From sequence record PV745554.1: 64,000 nt of DNA; one strand, written 5' to 3'. Below are positions 5,157 through 61,736 of the stretch, piece by piece. Within the stretch, counting starts at the first letter, position 1, and each line of letters starts with the position of its first letter. The position numbers and the translations under genes were made by a program. The notes under the pieces were generated by a model. It did not search any database. It saw only the letters and a list, made by a program, of their open reading frames with translations, and had not been told where the DNA came from.

Positions 5157-5172
5157 TGTCGTGAATCTTGAC
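5157..5172 (+). promoter_or_regulatory. Conserved promoter/operator motif TGTCGTGAATCTTGAC
   Basis: Ends in a sigma70 -35 hexamer; one of ~12 copies; intergenic before baseplate genes. Confidence 0.75.
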
Positions 5173-17214: not shown

Positions 17215-17853
17215 ATGCGTGTCTCTGACGCTGGCCTGAAGCTTATCCAGGCCTGGGAAGGTCTCGGCGACGGTAACCCCGCCACCGTGGACCTCGAACC
17301 CTACATCTGCCCGGCCAAGGTTTGGACCGTCGGCTGGGGGCACGCCCTGAAGACGCCGACCGGTCAGATCATCGACGTCGACGTCTTCGGCGCGGCCAGG
17401 GCCAAGGCCCTGGCCGCCGAATCCATGCAGCGCAAGTTCGGCAAGGGCGCCATCACCAAGGCCCAGGCCGTGGACCTCGTGCGCGAGGACGTGACCTATT
17501 TCGAGCGGCAGGTCGAGAAGCTGGTGGCAGGCAATGCGGCCCAGTGCGAGTTCGACGCCCTGGTGTCGTTCGCCTTCAACTGCGGCGTCGCCAACCTCCA
17601 GTCCTCGACCCTGCTGCGGATGCACAACGCCGGCAAGCGCAAGGTCGGCGACGTCTCGCTGTCGGACCTCTGCCAGAAGAGCAAGCTCTCCACGCCGATC
17701 GACAACGTCGCCGTGGCCTTCGTCCGCTGGAACAAGTTCAACGGCAAGTGGGCGCTGGGTCTGTTCCGCCGGCGCCTGTCCGAGGCCCTGGTCTACGGCG
17801 GCCACAATCCCGACGAGGCGGTCAAGGCCGCCCAAGCCTTCAAGGGCTGCTGA
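17215..17853 (+). CDS. Endolysin, phage lysozyme (GH24)
   Basis: LIQAWEG...YICPAKVWTVGWGH, FDALVSFAFNCG, RWNK..GLFRRRLSE. Confidence 0.9.
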   Translation: MRVSDAGLKLIQAWEGLGDGNPATVDLEPYICPAKVWTVGWGHALKTPTGQIIDVDVFGAARAKALAAESMQRKFGKGAITKAQAVDLVREDVTYFERQVEKLVAGNAAQCEFDALVSFAFNCGVANLQSSTLLRMHNAGKRKVGDVSLSDLCQKSKLSTPIDNVAVAFVRWNKFNGKWALGLFRRRLSEALVYGGHNPDEAVKAAQAFKGC

Positions 17854-17854
17854 C

Positions 17855-18343
17855 ATGGGCCTCTTCGCGATCATCGCCCTGGCCGTGAAGTTCCTGATGA
17901 ACCCGGCCGTCATGGGCGTGCTGTTCATCACCATCGCCGCCCTGACGGGACTGTGGTTCCTGGGCGGCCCGGCGCTGTTCTGGAAGGTCCTGCGCGACGC
18001 GCGTCTCTGGCTGCTGGTCGCCGTGGCGGCCGTGGTCTTCGGCTATGCCCACCTCCAGGCCAAGCTCGAAAAAACCGAGCAGCGCCTGGAGCAGGTCGAG
18101 CAGCAGAAGCAGGCCCACGACGACGGCCAGGAGGTCGTCAAGAACAACATCAAAAAGCAGGTCAAGCGCGCCCAGCAGGGGGCCAAGTACCAAGAGGTTA
18201 TCCACAATGCCCCGACTGGCGAAAAGCTCGACGCCCTCCTCGACGAGTTCGCGCGCGATCAAGGCGTTCCTGATCCCCGCCCTTCTGCTGCTCAGCCTGT
18301 CCCTGACGGCGTGTCAAAGTCTCCCGGTCGGATTCTCCCCTGA
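17855..18343 (+). CDS. Inner-membrane spanin (Rz-like)
   Basis: N-terminal hydrophobic segments then coiled-coil (KLEKTEQRLEQVEQQKQ); follows endolysin. Confidence 0.7.
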   Translation: MGLFAIIALAVKFLMNPAVMGVLFITIAALTGLWFLGGPALFWKVLRDARLWLLVAVAAVVFGYAHLQAKLEKTEQRLEQVEQQKQAHDDGQEVVKNNIKKQVKRAQQGAKYQEVIHNAPTGEKLDALLDEFARDQGVPDPRPSAAQPVPDGVSKSPGRILP

Positions 18344-18593
18344 CGACCTCTATCCGAAGGAACTGCGCACCTGCGCGCCGTCTCCTGCGGTCCCGCCGCG
18401 CCCCGCGCCCGGCGCGCCGCGCTCCGAGGACGCCCAGGCCGGCTACGTCAAGGATGACCACCTCGCCGGCGCCGACTGCCGCGACAAGGTCGAGTCCTGG
18501 AACGAGCGCGCCGTCAAGTACGAGGCCCAGTACAAGGCCATGAACGCCGGGCCGGCGGGCAAGCTGCTCGCCAAGTTCAAGGGGAAGAAGTGA
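18207..18593 (+). CDS. Outer-membrane spanin lipoprotein (Rz1-like), overlapping Rz in another frame
   Basis: Signal FLIPALLLLSLSLTA-C lipobox, Pro-rich segment; start codon uncertain. Confidence 0.72.
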   Translation: MPRLAKSSTPSSTSSRAIKAFLIPALLLLSLSLTACQSLPVGFSPDDLYPKELRTCAPSPAVPPRPAPGAPRSEDAQAGYVKDDHLAGADCRDKVESWNERAVKYEAQYKAMNAGPAGKLLAKFKGKK

Positions 18594-19078
18594 TGCCGCC
18601 CTGGGCCGCCGCGCCGCTGCGGGTCTGCGGCAACTTCTTCCGCTGGGTGCGCCTGACGCTGGACAATCTCTGCGATCGTCCGGACCACCTTCAGCGCCTG
18701 TCGATCATCGGCTCGGGCATGGCGGCCTTCCCGCTGATCCTGCTGATCATCCACATCCTCGTCTATTTCGGGCTGCACGGTCCCGACACGGCCGCCGCCC
18801 TGGCGGTCATCCCGATCATCGGCAACATGGGCTATGGGGCCTTGGCGCTCTACGCGCTGTCCCAGGTGGCGCTCCTGGGGATCATCAAGGGCATCCGGAT
18901 CGCCGCGCCCGGTGGCGTCAACGTCGCCATCGAGACCACGGCGGGCACGGGCGACGGCCTGTCCGACGACAACGACGACCATGACCATGGACACGGCCGC
19001 TGGCGCGGCCGGGACCGCGATCAAGGTTGCGAACCCAATCCCCCTGCCGGCTCTGGAGCCGGCGCTATCACGGAGTAG
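18590..19078 (+). CDS. Putative holin / membrane protein
   Basis: Two hydrophobic segments, last gene of lysis cassette, charged C-terminal tail. Confidence 0.5.
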   Translation: MMPPWAAAPLRVCGNFFRWVRLTLDNLCDRPDHLQRLSIIGSGMAAFPLILLIIHILVYFGLHGPDTAAALAVIPIIGNMGYGALALYALSQVALLGIIKGIRIAAPGGVNVAIETTAGTGDGLSDDNDDHDHGHGRWRGRDRDQGCEPNPPAGSGAGAITE

Positions 19079-19083
19079 GGATC

Positions 19084-19230
19084 ATGCGCGAAGGCTATGG
19101 CGGTCTGAAGATCATCGACGGGCTGGTCGGCGGCATCCTTCCGATCAAGGATGACATCATCCCGGTCAAGGACGACGTCAGCACCGGCTTCCCGGACGGC
19201 GACGCGCTCGCCCCGCTCGACTACGGATAG
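19084..19230 (+). CDS. Small hypothetical protein (48 aa)
   Basis: GGAG RBS before ATG 19084; MREGYGGLKIIDGLVGG... Confidence 0.45.
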   Translation: MREGYGGLKIIDGLVGGILPIKDDIIPVKDDVSTGFPDGDALAPLDYG

Positions 19231-19250
19231 ACCTGCGACATCCGGTCGCA

Positions 19251-19290
19251 TGTCGTGATCCTTGACATATCGACGTTCTTGCACTATGGT
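19251..19290 (+). promoter_or_regulatory. Promoter TGTCGTGATCC-TTGACA-N17-TATGGT
   Basis: Variant motif with canonical spacing; drives a non-coding region. Confidence 0.7.
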
Positions 19291-19296
19291 CGCGCT

Positions 19297-19594
19297 TCTT
19301 CGACGGCATCCCACCGTCCCACATGGCTCGCGACCCACCGTTCGCAGGGACACGATCGCGACCAAGGCGGTAGCCGGAACGATGCTAGACCGCAAGGTCA
19401 AGCCTCCGGAACACGCAGCAGCCGGCTGGAACGCTAGGCTCCTACGTCCAAACGGGGTAGAGGCTTCCTGAGCCTTCGGGCGAGAGACCCCACCACCTCG
19501 AAAGAGGTTCACGCGTGATGCGGAGAAGGGCTGAAAAGCCCAAGTGTCTGGAAGTGCAGAAGACCCCGCCGGAGCAATCCGGCGGGGTCTTTTT
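19297..19594 (+). ncRNA. Candidate ~300-nt structured ncRNA
   Basis: Own promoter and terminator; GCAA, UUCG, GAAA, GAAA tetraloop hairpins; no convincing ORF. Confidence 0.6.
19561..19594 (+). terminator. Intrinsic terminator
   Basis: AGACCCCGCCGGA-GCAA-TCCGGCGGGGTCT-TTTT. Confidence 0.9.
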
Positions 19595-19617
19595 CTGTCT
19601 GGAGCGGAGGAGCCCGA

Positions 19618-20409
19618 CTAGGCGCGCGCGCGGGCCTTGGAGGCGACCGGCATCGCCGGCGCCAGGGCGCCCACCTTGCCGACCACCTTGCCCAGGATCA
19701 CGATCTTGCTGGCCTCGACGTCGATGTGGTCCTTCAGGTCCGCGTCGTAGATGCGATAGGGGCCGGTCTTGCTCGGGCGCGTGACGTGCGCCACCTGCAT
19801 GGTCTTGTTGAGCCCGTAGACGAACTCGCCGCCGGCCGCGTTGGGCTCGACCTCGCGGCGGACCACCGCCATGTCACCCGGATTGAGGCCGGGGGCGAAG
19901 TCGTGGATCGCCGCCAGGGCCAGATCGGTGGGCTCGGCTTCGAAGCGCTCGCGCAGCCAGTCCGGATCGAGGTTCCAGGTCCGCAGGCGCTGGAACTCGC
20001 CGGTGCGCGGCTTGAAGGTCAGTTCCTCGACCGGGTTGGGCGAGCCGACCCCGAAGGTGATGTACTCGGGGGTGGTCTTCAAGACGTGAGCGATCTGCTC
20101 CAGCACATCGATGTGTGGCTTGACGCTGTCGGACTCGTACATGATGTAGGCGGTGCGCGCCAGGGGCCGACGCTCGCCAGCCTGCTTCGGCTCCCAGCCG
20201 GGTTTGGTGCTGACGTCCTTGCGCGAATTGCTCTGCTGGGTCAGGTAGACCCGCGACGCGACTTGTTCCTGGGTCAGGCCCAGGCCCATGCGGCAGGCGG
20301 TAATGCGCTGGCCGATGGTGCGAGGATGCGCGAGATCGGCATCCTTGTGGATCAGGGAACGAGACCGGTGCGCAGCAACGCCCGGCTTCATCTCGATCAC
20401 GGTTTGCAT
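19618..20409 (-). CDS. XRE-family HTH regulator with C-terminal S24-like domain (CI/LexA-like)
   Basis: IGQRITACRMGLGLTQEQVA HTH; IAHVLKTTPEYITFG; PGLNPGDMAVV beta domain. Confidence 0.75.
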   Translation of the reverse strand: MQTVIEMKPGVAAHRSRSLIHKDADLAHPRTIGQRITACRMGLGLTQEQVASRVYLTQQSNSRKDVSTKPGWEPKQAGERRPLARTAYIMYESDSVKPHIDVLEQIAHVLKTTPEYITFGVGSPNPVEELTFKPRTGEFQRLRTWNLDPDWLRERFEAEPTDLALAAIHDFAPGLNPGDMAVVRREVEPNAAGGEFVYGLNKTMQVAHVTRPSKTGPYRIYDADLKDHIDVEASKIVILGKVVGKVGALAPAMPVASKARARA

Positions 20410-20595
20410 ATCGTTCTCCTCCGTCCGTTGAGAACCGCGTCATTGGGTGTCGTGGTAACCCATGACATTCGCGATGGTTCCCAGACGCAACGTCTGTTTG
20501 CCAATGTTGACAAAGAGGGATTTACACCCTCTTTGGCAACACATCAAGGCCAGAGAAGAAAAAAGTTGACAGGTCGACTTAAGGGTGCGGCTGCA

Positions 20596-21279
20596 CTAAT
20601 TCCCGGTGGAGCCGAAACCGCCGGCGCCGCGCGCGGTCGAGGCGAGGTCATCGACCTCGACGACGGGCACGATCAGGCACTGCTCAAGGATGATCTGGGC
20701 GATCCGGTCGCCCGGATTGATCACCACGTTCTCGCCGTAGAACGGCGCGCCGAAGACGTCGGCCTGCTTGCCGTGGTGGGTCAGGATGACCTTGACCTCG
20801 CCGGTGTAGTCCTCGTCCACCACGCCGGCCAGGACGCCCAGGCCCTTGACGCCCAGACCCGAGCGGGGCGCGACGCGGGCGTAGGTGCCTTCGGGCGCGG
20901 TCATCGCCAGCCCCGTCGACAGGAGCGCGCGCTCCCCAGGCCGCAGGGTCACCTTCTCGGTCCCGTCATAGTAGACGTCCAGGCCGGCGGCTTTGGGCGA
21001 GCCGCGCGTCGGCAGCTTGGCGGTCGGCGTCAGGCGCTTGACCTTCAGGACGGGCTCATTGCTGTTCATGCGCGTCATCTCCAGCGCCTCCGACCAGGAG
21101 ACGAACTTCACGTCGCGCGTGAACCGGCCGTAGAGTTCGACGTCCTGGCCGCCCCCGACCTTGACCTCCGCCTCGATGCCGGACGCCGCCAGGGTGTCAG
21201 CCAGGGCGTAGGCCTGCTCGGCTTGCGCGGTCCGTTGGTAGAAGACGACAGCTTTGCTGTAAAGGCGGGTCGGGGACAT
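20596..21279 (-). CDS. dut: dUTPase with ~70-aa N-terminal extension
   Basis: AAGLDV, APRSG, GVVDEDYTGEVKVIL, GDRIAQ, RGAGGFGSTG motifs. Confidence 0.95.
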   Translation of the reverse strand: MSPTRLYSKAVVFYQRTAQAEQAYALADTLAASGIEAEVKVGGGQDVELYGRFTRDVKFVSWSEALEMTRMNSNEPVLKVKRLTPTAKLPTRGSPKAAGLDVYYDGTEKVTLRPGERALLSTGLAMTAPEGTYARVAPRSGLGVKGLGVLAGVVDEDYTGEVKVILTHHGKQADVFGAPFYGENVVINPGDRIAQIILEQCLIVPVVEVDDLASTARGAGGFGSTGN

Positions 21280-22661: not shown

Positions 22662-22714
22662 GTGTGGGAGGTCTCGAAAGGAGGGATGGGGAGGTGAAGG
22701 GCGCCGGCGGCGCC

Positions 22715-25528
22715 CTAGCCCTCGCAGGCCACGCAGGTGGAGTCGGACGTCGGGTTCAGCGCCAGCAGCGCGGCCTCTTCGGCGGACCCCGTGGTCGGGA
22801 CCTCCTCGGCGACGTCGATCTGCTTGCGCTCGACCTTGGTGTTGGTGTTCTCGGCCCGCTTGGGCGTCGTCGACCGCAGGTAGTACATCGACTTGACGCC
22901 GTACCCCTCGTTCCAGGCCAGGAAGGTGACTTCCGACAGCGTCTCGGCCGTGGCGTCGTGCGGGTGGAAGACGTTCAGGGACTGGCCCTGGCAGATGTCC
23001 TCCGTCCGCCCGACGGCCAGCCGCACGACCCAGCGCTGGTCGAGTTCCATCGCCGTCTTGTAGACGCGCTTCTTGTGGTCCAGGACCGCCGGGTCGACTT
23101 CGATGCCCAGGGCCTCGAAGAACTCGACCGAGAAGTGCTGGATCGAGCCCTCGTTGGCGACGATGGTCTTCCAGACCTCATCGGTGTCGGCGCCCAGGCT
23201 CGCCAGCCACGCGCGCAGCCAGCGGTTCTTGACCTGGAACGAACCCGAGAGGGTCTTGTGCAGGAAGGTGTTGGCGCGGTTGGGCTCGATCGACGGCGAA
23301 GCGCCGCCGCAGAGGATCGACGAGGAGGCGTTGGGGGCCACCGCCAGCTTGTGGGCGAAGCGCTCGCCCGAGCCTTCCATGTCCGGAGCTTCGCCGCGCT
23401 CGGCGCCCAGGATCAGCGACGCCGCGTCGGCCTTGCGGCGCATGTGGCGGAAGATGGTCTTATTGAGCGTCTCGGCCGCCATGCTCTCGAACGGGATGTC
23501 GAGCGACTGGAGCAGCGAGTGGAAGCCCAGCAGGCCCAGGCCCACCGAGCGCTCGCGCACGGCGCTGTAGGAGGCCCGGTGCATCTCGTCCGGCGCGTTG
23601 TCGATGAACACCTGGAGGCAGTTGTCCAGCATGCGCATCAGGTCTTCGATGAAGGTCGGGTGATCCTTCCACTCGACCCACTTTTCGGCGTTGACGCTCG
23701 ACAGGCAGCAGACGGCCGTGCGCATCTTGCCGAACACGTCGCGACCGGTGCCCAGCATGATCTCCGAGCAGTTGCCCGTCAGGTAGCCATTGAAGACCAG
23801 CCGGTTGCGCTTGGGCTCGGTGGCGCAGAAGACGTCAGCCTTGTGGGCGAGCGGATGCACGCTGGCGACCGTAGCGGCCAGCTTGGGCGCGACCTCGATC
23901 TGGTGGGCCGCGTCGATCTGCTCGGCGGTCTTGGACAGCACCGCGCCGATCTTCGACAGGTACGCCACGTCCCAGGCCGACAGCGAGAAAGCGCTGACCG
24001 TGTCGGTCAGGCGGATGCGCGGATGCAGGCCCGTCTCGACGGCCATCAGGCGCATCTCGCGGATCAGGTCCGCGTCGGTCGAGCCGACCGTCAGCCAGCG
24101 CACGCCGTCGATCTCGATCCATTCGCCGGCCGCGTCCAGCGCCCCGCCCAGCCACGCCAAACGGCGGCTCGGGGTGTGATGGAACGGCACGACGCCGGTG
24201 GCCAGCGTCAGCGGGTCATAGCGCAGGGTGGTGCCTGCCTCGTCACCTTCCAGGTTCAGCGACAGCGCCGACAGGGTCTTGAGCACCGCGTCGGGCAGGC
24301 CCGCCGGCACGAAGGCCGACAGACGGTTCTTGTCGCTGAAGCCAGCGAAGGTCGTCCAGCCGGCCGTGTAGGCGACTTCCAGCGGCGGGCTGGCGTCGCT
24401 GACGCCCTCGGTGATCGGCACATTGGCCTTGGCCAGCACCGTGCCGTCCTTCAGTTCGCCCGCGCGCACCTCGACGCCCGCTTCGGTGTAGAACTTGTGG
24501 TAGGGGGTGCAGTCGATGAAGTCGCCGTCCTCGAACCAGACGCGGACCAGTTCGGCCTTCTCGTCGGTGGCGTTGGTCTGGTGGATCAGGACGTTGCTGA
24601 ACTCGACACCGTTCCAGACGTCATGGAAGCCGCCGGCCAGCGAGGCGATCGGCAGGTGACCGTTGCGGGTCAGGATTTCGGTCTCGCCAGCCACGCAGAG
24701 GTTCGACTGGCGAACGCTCAGGCCAAGCTTCTTCTGCCGGTCCGGGAAGTGGCGGTTGGAGGTGTCGATGAAGTGGATGTAGGGCTCGCCCGTCTGCACG
24801 CGCGTCTCGATCAGCAGGCGCCACAGGTCGCGCGCCCGCTCCATGCGGATCACCTCGCCCGTCTTGGGCGAGCGCAGGGCGAAGTCGGTGTCGTCGCGCA
24901 CCGCGATCATGAACTCGTCGGTGACGTTGACCGCGTTGTGCAGGTTGGTGATCTTGCGGTTGTGGTCCCCGCCCGTCGGCTTACGCGCGGTGATGAACTC
25001 GCGGATTTCCGGGTGGTGGATGTCCAGGTAGACGGCGTTGGAGCCCCGGCGCGTGCCGCCCTGGCTGACGGCCAGGATCAGGCGGTCGTCCACCGCCATG
25101 AACGGGATGACGCCGGTCGACTGCGAACCCTTGGAGGTCTTCTCGCCCAGGCCGCGCAGGGCGCCGTAATAGGAGCCGATGCCGCCGCCCATCGACGACA
25201 GCCAGATGACCTCGTCATAGTGCTCGGAGATCGACTCGCGGCTGTCCTCGATCGCGGTGAGGAAGCAGGAGATCGGCAGGCCACGGGCCGAGCCGCCGTT
25301 CGACAGCAGCGGGGTGGCGTACATGAACCAGAGGTTCGAGACGTATTCGTACAGACGCTGGCCGTGCTCGGCATCATCCGCAAAGGCCGCACTCGCGCGC
25401 GCGAAGGCCTCCTGGGGGGACGTTTCCCCAGGCAGCAGATAGCGTTCACGGAGGGTCTGAAGGGTGAAGTCGTCGAGCAGGGCGTCGCGGGTGAGATCGA
25501 TCTTGATTTCGTGCGTTGCGACAGCCAT
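22715..25528 (-). CDS. nrdA: Ribonucleotide reductase class Ia alpha subunit, intein-containing
   Basis: ATPLLSN, PISCFL, QGGTRRG, SNL/CSE, AVAPNASSSI, KSMYYLR, C-terminal CVACEG; ATG 25528 preferred. Confidence 0.95.
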   Translation of the reverse strand: MAVATHEIKIDLTRDALLDDFTLQTLRERYLLPGETSPQEAFARASAAFADDAEHGQRLYEYVSNLWFMYATPLLSNGGSARGLPISCFLTAIEDSRESISEHYDEVIWLSSMGGGIGSYYGALRGLGEKTSKGSQSTGVIPFMAVDDRLILAVSQGGTRRGSNAVYLDIHHPEIREFITARKPTGGDHNRKITNLHNAVNVTDEFMIAVRDDTDFALRSPKTGEVIRMERARDLWRLLIETRVQTGEPYIHFIDTSNRHFPDRQKKLGLSVRQSNLCVAGETEILTRNGHLPIASLAGGFHDVWNGVEFSNVLIHQTNATDEKAELVRVWFEDGDFIDCTPYHKFYTEAGVEVRAGELKDGTVLAKANVPITEGVSDASPPLEVAYTAGWTTFAGFSDKNRLSAFVPAGLPDAVLKTLSALSLNLEGDEAGTTLRYDPLTLATGVVPFHHTPSRRLAWLGGALDAAGEWIEIDGVRWLTVGSTDADLIREMRLMAVETGLHPRIRLTDTVSAFSLSAWDVAYLSKIGAVLSKTAEQIDAAHQIEVAPKLAATVASVHPLAHKADVFCATEPKRNRLVFNGYLTGNCSEIMLGTGRDVFGKMRTAVCCLSSVNAEKWVEWKDHPTFIEDLMRMLDNCLQVFIDNAPDEMHRASYSAVRERSVGLGLLGFHSLLQSLDIPFESMAAETLNKTIFRHMRRKADAASLILGAERGEAPDMEGSGERFAHKLAVAPNASSSILCGGASPSIEPNRANTFLHKTLSGSFQVKNRWLRAWLASLGADTDEVWKTIVANEGSIQHFSVEFFEALGIEVDPAVLDHKKRVYKTAMELDQRWVVRLAVGRTEDICQGQSLNVFHPHDATAETLSEVTFLAWNEGYGVKSMYYLRSTTPKRAENTNTKVERKQIDVAEEVPTTGSAEEAALLALNPTSDSTCVACEG
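23771..24697 (-). mobile_element. Intein (309 aa) in NrdA with degenerate LAGLIDADG-like region
   Basis: QSNL|CVAGETEILTRNG ... NRLVFNGYLTGN|CSEI; internal WLGGALDAAG. Confidence 0.92.
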
Positions 25529-41144: not shown

Positions 41145-41530
41145 GCATCGTTGTAATTCGGACAACGGAAACGGCGGCAAGACGGGGGTGCGATTCCCCC
41201 CGCCTCCACCACCACGAGCCCCTGGCGCTGGGAGTACGCGACTCCTGGGCAGGGAGTGTTACCCTGACGGACCATTGCTGGCCCGAGCCAAAGGTAGCCG
41301 GGGGTTCTTGATGCTGGGGGCGATCAGCTTCGATTGGCGCATGTGACTGGAAGACGCAACGGTGGGTGACCTCCAGGCCAGCTTGCTGGTGATCGGGTCG
41401 AAGCAACAGAAATGTCGCTGCAAATGACAACGCTCCGTTCGCGGTGCGTGAAGCCATCGCCGCCTAATAAGCGGTAGAGGCGTGTCCCGGCGGACGCGCG
41501 TGTCACAAAAAGGCCCTGCATCTACGGACC
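41145..41530 (+). ncRNA. ssrA: Two-piece (circularly permuted) tmRNA; tag ANDNAPFAVREAIAA; outer ends approximate
   Basis: Acceptor piece ending CGCCUCC-A-CCA (41201-41211) precedes 5' GGGGGCG (41316); G3.U70; tag ORF 41420-41470 ending TAA TAA. Confidence 0.92.
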
Positions 41531-61136: not shown

Positions 61137-61736
61137 ATGAACGACGACGATTTGGACTGGCAGGACGGCGAGCTTTCGCCGGCCCGCGCTCCGGTCACGA
61201 CCAAGGACATCGCCGATGTCGCCCAGGCTCCGGCCGGCGGGCGGATGGCGGCGATGCGTGAAGCGGGTGATGCGCATCGGCGCGACTTCCTGCTCCTGCG
61301 CGGTCCGCTGGGCGTGGTCCGTCTGTCGCTCGCGCACGTTCCGGCGCTGCACGCTCTTTGGCGAGTCTGGTCGCGCAAGCGCACGGCCCAGACCGCCGAT
61401 CCTGGCGCCAGTCTTGCAGAGATCGGCGAGGAGATGAATTTGCCGGCGGCCTCGGTGCGTCCGATGGTCGTCAGCCTGCTCAAGAACCGACTCATCCGGA
61501 CGCGGCGCAGCCACCACGGATGGCAAGGGGTGCGGGCGACCTACTACCCGTCGGCGATCGCCGTCCAGGCCCTGGCCTTGGCGGAGGTCCTCGGTCCGGG
61601 GCATGCGGTTCAGGTGGGGCGCAACGCCTCGGCCTGGGCCAATCGCAGCCTGACCGAACCCGGCAACCTGTTCCAACACGCCGCCTTGTTGCGCGGCGGG
61701 GCTCCCCTCGGGGCCTCCGAGACGGAGTATTCATGA
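61137..61736 (+). CDS. Putative winged-helix DNA-binding protein
   Basis: SLAEIGEEMNLPAASVRPMVVSLLKNRLI; TTGACA promoter at 61083. Confidence 0.55.
   Translation: MNDDDLDWQDGELSPARAPVTTKDIADVAQAPAGGRMAAMREAGDAHRRDFLLLRGPLGVVRLSLAHVPALHALWRVWSRKRTAQTADPGASLAEIGEEMNLPAASVRPMVVSLLKNRLIRTRRSHHGWQGVRATYYPSAIAVQALALAEVLGPGHAVQVGRNASAWANRSLTEPGNLFQHAALLRGGAPLGASETEYS

Follow-up and report, generated by a model that had tools for sequence, protein, structure and literature searches.

Small RNAs encoded in trans by phages and prophages, such as the lambda OOP, P22 Sar, DicF and IsrK types, are 50-100 nt in length and end at an intrinsic terminator. The RNA predicted here resembles them in being a non-coding unit of a phage genome with a sigma-70-type promoter and a rho-independent terminator. 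It differs from them in its length of approximately 300 nt, its at least eight hairpins and its invariant core; moreover, it is antisense to no gene and matches no Rfam sRNA family beyond its terminator. Riboswitch-containing sRNAs and antisense RNAs are represented by EutX/Rli55, AspocR and SreA, and like the present RNA they consist of a structured domain followed by a terminator and face a neighboring gene; however, this RNA contains no known aptamer and its competing pairing is not conserved. Phage phi29, which has a prolate head, encodes the structured pRNA under a dedicated promoter, and the pRNA works within a ribonucleoprotein. A phage-encoded structured RNA, a promoter of its own and a prolate-head phage are found here as well, but there is no similarity to pRNA in sequence or structure and nothing that supports a packaging role.

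Two further groups of structured RNAs are relevant. The YrlA genes that accompany Ro60/TROVE in CcrColossus, CcrPW, Gurke and Domovoi are structured phage ncRNAs that occupy the same slot downstream of the RNR-dUTPase-HTH genes. In contrast, the present RNA lies on the opposite strand, gives no match to the covariance model, has no tRNA-like module that could be found and is carried by phages without TROVE. Large orphan 'ornate' structured RNAs (ROOL, GOLLD, raiA and OLE) are often linked to phages (Rfam, PMC12286853). They share with this RNA a multi-helix organization, an invariant core, covarying peripheral stems, GNRA loops and a self-complementary conserved segment, and they too are without a known biochemical role. 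Unlike them, the present RNA is smaller, belongs to one phage lineage and matches none of their models, and its oligomerization is conjecture. It adds a new, previously unannotated family to a kind of element that is already familiar.

Genomic location

The window (the entire 64,000-nucleotide stretch of record PV745554.1 that was analyzed, whose position 1 corresponds to position 61222 of PV231352.1) derives from Caulobacter phage RBC63/RBC8/RBC11/BL64, a CcrRogue-like relative of phiCbK. The RNA is located in an unannotated gap, at the point where both the direction of transcription and the GC skew switch, and the gap holds a promoter, a region of approximately 300 nt with at least eight hairpins and a 14-bp terminator. 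The features of the locus are as follows.

19231-19617: unannotated gap, with late/lysis genes (plus strand) on one side and a convergent CI-like HTH gene (minus strand) on the other
Upstream, plus strand: late module with tail genes, endolysin at 17215, spanins, holin (18593-19078) and a 48-aa ORF (19084-19230)
19234-19250, plus strand: hairpin/palindrome TGCGAC-N5-GTCGCA, immediately 3' of the point where the last late ORF stops and adjoining the promoter motif
19251-19290, plus strand: promoter, with upstream element TGTCGTGATCC (19251-61), -35 element TTGACA (19262-67), 17-nt spacer and -10 element TATGGT (19285-90)
19297-19595, plus strand: predicted non-coding RNA of ~300 nt, its 5' end placed from the -10 position (+/-2 nt) and its 3' end in the U run
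19560-19595, probably both strands: intrinsic terminator, with arms 19560-73 and 19578-91, loop GCAA and a U run
19618-20409, minus strand: CI-like HTH (XRE) regulator gene, with an N-terminal Pfam HTH_3 domain and a match to PHROG 4 (transcriptional repressor) over residues 24-246
Downstream, minus strand: convergent module, in which the regulator gene is followed by dUTPase and ribonucleotide reductase

The palindrome at 19234-19250 is unique within the window; among 12 aligned phages its stem is invariant and its loop variable, and the equivalent position in Brevundimonas phage vB_BgoS-Bajun reads GCGACGC-ATA-GCGTCGT. It is possibly a weak terminator or the 3'-end hairpin of the late operon. 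Within the 48-aa ORF a tandem 21-nt repeat (19134-19175) encodes ILPIKDD and IIPVKDD, and both of its copies are 81% complementary to 19250-19266, which covers the upstream element and -35 of the RNA promoter. This adjacent small ORF, considered as a source of a protein partner for the RNA, has no counterpart in Bajun. On the minus strand, the CI-like repressor is conserved throughout a subfamily whose phages are considered virulent and apparently shares its terminator with the RNA, and the RNR alpha subunit (22714-25527) contains an intein according to the annotation of the RBC63 record.

Distribution among phages

The 387-nt stretch 19231-19617 is 100% identical in the Caulobacter phages RBC63, RBC8, RBC11 and BL64, 96.6% identical in CcrRogue and 94% identical in CcrBL10. 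Identity falls to 81-83% in BL57 and the Shapirovirus group, which comprises phiCbK, Magneto, Karma, Swift, Ccr phages, S2L and RBC57. The RNA region is present in all 26 of the 26 phiCbK-like records, at 80-100% identity, and none of these records annotates anything in the gap except for a terminator in three of them (phiCbK, Karma and Swift).

A diverged homolog was found in Bajun with nhmmer and a profile built from the alignment (L016:3258-3695, minus strand of that locus), as two segments with E = 1.5e-4 and 1.9e-4. The Bajun copy is syntenic, with the lysis cassette before it and the HTH gene convergent to it, and is approximately 100 nt longer than the copies in Caulobacter phages. Blocks of sequence common to it and the Caulobacter phages are AUGGCUCG, UUCGCAGG, GCGACCAARGCGGUARCCGG, CUGGAACG and GGUUCACGCGYGAUGCGG.

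More distant relatives were not recovered by any of the searches. A covariance model built from 10 sequences (R1) and run against the syntenic loci of Bajun, Colossus, Domovoi and Gurke found only the Bajun terminator beyond the window; R1 is no more sensitive than nhmmer because Bajun has large insertions. Searching the regions downstream of the HTH gene in Colossus, Domovoi, Gurke, RB23 and CcrSC with nhmmer returned the terminator only, and blastn with the Bajun copy gave no additional relatives. Exact-pattern scans of the conserved blocks across IMG/VR, JGI metagenomes and GTDB genomes produced hundreds of matches, all of them due to chance or to known isolates and none confirmed by nhmmer; one apparent match (L039) falls in a coding region and was rejected. 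Thus, on these data, the RNA family is confined to Shapirovirus, Poindextervirus and Bajun. The literature searched contains no description of this RNA.

The promoter and the promoter class of the phage

The initial annotation had proposed a promoter of the form TTGACA-N17-TATGGT, and this promoter is indeed present at 19262-19290, where it is the sole sigma-70-like match between 18500 and 20600 (0.3 expected). Its -35 and -10 elements do not vary in 12 Caulobacter phages, and the Bajun copy of the RNA carries the promoter motif too (GTCGTCGATC-TTGACA). More specifically, TTGACA-N17-TATNNT occurs five times in the window with at most one mismatch, as compared with 0.36 expected, and all five sites have the upstream element (T)GTCGTGAATC. 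A search with TGTCGTGAATCTTGAC, allowing up to three mismatches, gave 15 matches in the window as compared with 0.38 expected. The promoter motif of the phage is a 17-nt string, TGTCGTGAATC-TTGACA, followed 17 nt on by a weak and variable -10 element. At least 12 copies occur in the window, at 5157, 11309, 17139, 19251, 25650(-), 26605(-), 32827(-), 40048(-), 42115, 48041(-), 54049 and 56831.

The good copies of this motif are intergenic and oriented like the gene downstream, and they serve genes of all modules. Copies with 0-2 mismatches precede, for example, the genes for endolysin, RNR alpha, a Pol III-like exonuclease, a DNA methylase and a cadherin-like protein, and a terminator-like hairpin often lies directly 5' of the other copies. 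Because the RNA promoter shares the extended motif, it is an ordinary member of the main promoter class of the phage; among the motif copies it has the best -10 element. The motif string was not found in the literature searched.

Secondary structure

The comparison across phages shows the fold of the predicted transcript to be a string of at least eight hairpins (P1-P7 and the terminator), its long-range arrangement aside. Every feature proposed initially was recovered at its position, including the five hairpins (19302-19318, 19388-99, 19472-81, 19495-508 and 19528-41) as they had been written; all but the first of these vary by compensatory substitutions in homologs. The elements of the fold, all on the plus strand, are given below with their counterparts in Bajun, which retains P1-P7 and the terminator and has compensatory changes in P3, P4, P5 and P6.

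19302-19318: P1, hairpin GACGG/CCGUC with loop CAUCCCA, without variation in Caulobacter phages; in Bajun a 7-bp hairpin CUGGGGA/UCUCCAG at the same place
19325-19363: P2, hairpin GGC-UCGCGA/UCGCGACC with a bulged C and an apical CCC/GGG that closes the loop; stem kept in Bajun, with C-G to U-G and G-C to G-U changes
19374-19409: P3, composite hairpin with base CCGGA/UCCGG, then GCU/AGC and the tip GACC-GCAA-GGUC; in Bajun the base is CCGGC/GCCGG (A-U to C-G) and the tip hairpin is deleted
19421-19439: P4, hairpin GCCGGC/GCU-A-GGC with conserved hexaloop UGGAAC and G-U pair 19424-19435, unvarying in Caulobacter phages; in Bajun CCCGAC-UGGAAC-GUCGGG, with an identical loop, two compensatory pairs and one G-U to G-C change
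19454-19491: P5, helix GGGGU/ACCCC, which encloses P5a; in Bajun GAGGGA/UCCCUC around a GCGGC/GCCGC hairpin, with the same UGAG flank
19472-81: P5a, internal hairpin GCC-UUCG-GGC with flanks UGAG and GAGAG
19495-19508: P6, hairpin ACCUC-GAAA-GAGGU; ACCC/GGGU in Shapirovirus and GCCCC/GGGGU in Bajun
19509-19527: conserved linker UCACGCGUGAUGCGGAGAA, which includes the 8-nt palindrome CACGCGUG; nearly invariant, including in Bajun (CGCGCG there)
19528-19541: P7, hairpin GGGCU-GAAA-AGCCC, with three of its five pairs changed on both sides; GGCA/UGCC in Bajun
19560-19595: terminator (see above); 12 bp in Bajun

Several of these stems change in sequence while remaining paired. In the tip of P3 one pair appears as A-U, G-U or G-C and another as C-G or U-A, such that GACC/GGUC becomes GGCU/AGCC (P3b). 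The innermost pair of P5 is U-A, C-G or U-G among Caulobacter phages and A-U in Bajun, with GGGGU/ACCCC changing to GGGGC/GCCCC, and the stem of P5a alternates between GCC/GGC and GGC/GCC around a loop of UUCG, GAAA or GCAA. P7 changes from GGGCU/AGCCC to GGGAC/GUCCU, and the terminator arms likewise show compensatory changes among homologs. The linkers and loops between the stems are nearly invariant, namely UGGAAC in P4, the conserved UUCGCAGG in the apical loop of P2, and AAGGCGGUAG, ACACGC and UCACGCGUGAUGCGG. The linker at 19509-19527 may pair with CACGC (19412-16) or mediate dimerization; the pairing of CACGC with GCGUG (19513-17) is kept only in part in Bajun. Long-range helices predicted by RNAalifold for the 5' domain (19300-07/19373-82 and 19405-08/19521-24) are broken in Bajun, and one such long-range helix competes with P1. 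The local P1 and P3 are preferred because Bajun lacks the long-range helices and supports the local ones.

Statistical comparison was made with two alignments, A1 of 12 phages and a model-based alignment (A4) used for the covariation statistics. The initial annotation had named covariation across related phages as a check, and compensatory changes were found: nine pairs are changed on both sides, as compared with 4.9±1.3 in column shuffles (reached in 0 of 500), and the covariation score is 0.118 as compared with 0.065 (again 0 of 500). When the partner column was slid by 1-3 columns as a control, at most two pairs were changed on both sides. The core helices never vary among Caulobacter phages, and thus their support from covariation rests on a single outgroup, Bajun.

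The pattern of sequence conservation is also distinctive. Comparison of the window with phiCbK gives 91% identity in the core (19297-19455), as compared with 82-86% in the flanking lysis genes, 83% in the HTH gene and just 44-62% in the outer hairpins. Approximately 230 nt of the RNA are nearly invariant. The folding energy of the plus strand (-135.5 kcal/mol) is lower than that of shuffled sequences (-111.8±5.4, z = -4.4); the minus strand also beats its shuffles (z = -4.1), and energy by itself therefore cannot distinguish the two strands. Every Caulobacter phage has a G-U pair at 19424-19435, and further G-U pairs occur in P3b, P5, P7 and the terminator. Because these would be A-C mismatches on the minus strand, the RNA is assigned to the plus strand.

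The terminator had been described as strong, and its 14 fully complementary base pairs (14/14), U run and energy of -33.9 kcal/mol bear this out. A simple terminator scan missed it because the stem uses part of the T run. The convergent HTH gene ends 23 nt from it, at its stop codon, and the terminator probably works in both directions. In Bertelyvirus phages, which are without the RNA, a related terminator follows the HTH gene, and the terminator may originally have belonged to that gene.

Searches for known RNA families

The initial annotation could not assign the RNA to a known family, and the Rfam check leads to the same result: no family reached its gathering threshold at the region. A gathering scan of the window with Rfam 15 found only tmRNA_permuted and three tRNAs, all of them elsewhere, and when the copies of the window, phiCbK and Bajun were scanned permissively (E up to 10), the only matches were of terminator type, none of which was common to the three. 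The YrlA model does not match the RNA at E up to 10, and the same model finds the copies in CcrColossus and Gurke. In a tblastn search with the Colossus protein the TROVE gene was absent from the phiCbK-like phages and from Bajun; the matches were in Colossus, CcrPW and seven Brevundimonas phages. The tmRNA models have no match within 19100-19750, and Bajun does not retain the CCACCA-like stretch found at 19489-94. The sole 6S RNA match was the terminator (E = 6.8), and 6S RNA was rejected since the fold is a string of hairpins and not a long rod with a central bubble.

The tmRNA of this phage is encoded elsewhere, by a permuted (two-piece) gene at 41149-41467 on the plus strand (Rfam, 88.5 bits). 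It is unannotated in the RBC63 record and was missed by ARAGORN, and its neighbors are a tRNA-Cys gene and two tRNA-Met genes of unusual length (84-89 nt).

Proposed role and alternative explanations

The claim that the region encodes a structured ncRNA is supported by its conservation above that of its flanks, the compensatory changes, G-U pairs that exist on the plus strand only, indels that break reading frames and the syntenic homolog in Bajun. We consider it reasonably probable (roughly 0.6) that this is an unannotated gene of phiCbK-like phages for a structured ncRNA of approximately 300 nt, with its own promoter and terminator, which acts in trans through its fold. RNA polymerase would start at about 19297 from a promoter of the phage class (TGTCGTGAatC-TTGACA-N17-TATGGT) and would stop at the hairpin terminator 19560-19595. 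The resulting transcript would fold into P1-P7 and the terminator, with near-invariant linkers and loops between them, and the folded RNA would work in trans on a protein of the phage or the host, by binding it, scaffolding it or serving as its decoy. Action in trans via a folded shape is favored because the core varies less than the flanking protein genes do, whereas for the outer stems it is enough to stay paired. By the same comparisons, roles as a message, as an antisense RNA or as a simple seed-pairing sRNA appear less likely than a fold-borne role in trans.

Stand-alone transcription, with a 5' end near 19297 and a 3' end near 19595, is what the promoter and terminator motifs suggest, and as expected of an independent sRNA gene, these enclose a non-coding stretch. 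Transcripts of the late operon may in addition read through into the RNA, in which case the region could also serve as a 3' UTR. Searches of public runs returned only wastewater metatranscriptome libraries, which contained at most 53% of the words of the RNA; over 18000-21000, four such runs gave scattered short contigs across several genes, which were flagged as probably DNA. As a separate observation, these 'RNA-seq' libraries, from two studies, contain both near-identical and ~90%-identical fragments of 18000-21000, and thus close relatives of RBC63 are present in wastewater.

Dimerization through the palindrome CACGCGUG (CGCGCG in Bajun) is speculative. It forms part of a bolder proposal, which we regard as doubtful, that the RNA represents a new class of large functional phage RNA, whether a ribozyme, an RNA that self-assembles through the CACGCGUG/CGCGCG palindrome, or the subunit of a ribonucleoprotein that manipulates a host process. 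If this were true, the new class would fill the role slot of the Ro60-Y RNA modules or the tmRNA in sister genera.

Alternatively, the RNA may be a base-pairing regulatory sRNA in which a conserved single-stranded stretch targets mRNAs of the host or the phage by pairing, with the hairpins mainly conferring stability. The promoter and intrinsic terminator are those of classical sRNAs and several of the invariant stretches are unpaired; however, the RNA is 3-4 times the typical sRNA length, is nearly invariant over approximately 230 nt and not over a short seed, and is antisense to nothing. This explanation is accordingly judged unlikely.

Slightly less likely is a role in cis, in which the region forms the structured 3' end of the late/lysis operon, protecting it from exonucleases and insulating it from the convergent early unit, with the promoter being secondary. 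In both the Caulobacter phages and Bajun the region always follows the last gene of the lysis module, its terminator is common to the convergent gene, and the hairpin at 19234-19250 has no U run, such that read-through is likely. Yet protection would require neither 230 nt of invariant sequence nor a full conserved promoter between the ORF and the element, and other convergent boundaries have just a terminator.

A riboswitch-like sensor, in which a ligand-bound core would control the terminator and read-through would be antisense to the HTH-dUTPase-RNR operon, is highly improbable. A conserved multi-helix core does lie just 5' of the terminator and faces the convergent operon, and parts of P5 resemble a terminator arm. 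The initial annotation had noted this likeness for AGACCCCACC (19485-94) and suggested an alternative fold. The resemblance to the 5' arm stands, with 9 of 10 positions complementary to the 3' arm (19581-90) in the window, but the alternative pairing is unsupported. Only 7-8 of the 10 positions are complementary in other phages, so that the pairing is not conserved, and forcing it raises the folding energy from -135.5 to -115.7 kcal/mol, a cost of approximately 20 kcal/mol. Moreover, the variable base 19487 tracks its P5 partner 19458 and not the terminator, BL10 being a clear counter-example to the alternative. The likeness is regarded as that of two G+C-rich arms of similar composition. No conserved pairing was found that is mutually exclusive with the terminator, no known aptamer matched in the Rfam scans, and there is no gene downstream on the same strand, the next gene being the convergent 19618-20409 (minus strand).

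Even less probable is an element that acts as DNA and not as RNA, such as a replication origin, a set of iterons or an array of protein-binding sites. Short direct repeats (CCCACCGT and TCGCGACC, each present twice) and palindromes occur at a position where transcription direction and GC skew change, but the repeats are the two strands of P2, the variation in stems is compensatory with G-U pairs on one strand only, and a promoter and a terminator flank the region.

The region had also been said to hold no credible ORF. ORFs of 60-89 codons do in fact overlap it, as is expected at 63% G+C, but none behaves like a gene, and neither a conserved frame nor substitutions biased toward synonymous sites, the marks of a protein-coding small ORF, were found. 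A small protein could be read, for example, from 19255-19437 (60 codons) or from AUG 19518, which is conserved and has an SD-like GAGG 10 nt before it, but this explanation can be dismissed almost entirely. Variable columns fall 15/10/12 by codon position without periodicity or third-position bias, close relatives differ by four single-nucleotide indels, and the first of the two frames, which is the longest shared one, is interrupted by stop codons in Rogue and BL57. The second is shifted between the window and phiCbK and crosses the terminator hairpin.

Biological significance

The slot downstream of the HTH gene is occupied by different RNA genes in the sister genera. In CcrColossus and Gurke it holds several YrlA-like Y RNAs, a tRNA and a Ro60/TROVE gene, and in RB23 and CcrSC a permuted tmRNA and three tRNAs. 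Neither the profile nor the covariance model joins the present RNA to these loci, except through the terminator that trails the HTH gene in all cases. The sister-genus ncRNA islands extend over L017:3125-4505, L019:3197-4208, L018:3215-4193, L261:3077-4391 and L262:3092-4266, and each includes several hundred nucleotides not accounted for by these genes, such as L261:3150-3810 and the greater part of L018:3215-4193.

The phage phiCbK is a classic Caulobacter phage with decades of research on the cell cycle and pili behind it, and this gene is nevertheless absent from all 26 of the 26 deposited annotations. A core that is conserved above its lysis and regulator neighbors makes it very likely that the RNA, which we favor as a trans-acting structured ncRNA, is important to the phage, and it is a tractable starting point for work on phage RNA biology in a genetically amenable model host. 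The analysis also reveals the main promoter motif of the phage. The region downstream of the HTH gene emerges as an island of ncRNA genes in this subfamily, occupied by Y RNAs with Ro60, by tmRNA or by the RNA described here, and provides a comparative framework for the roles of such RNAs during infection.
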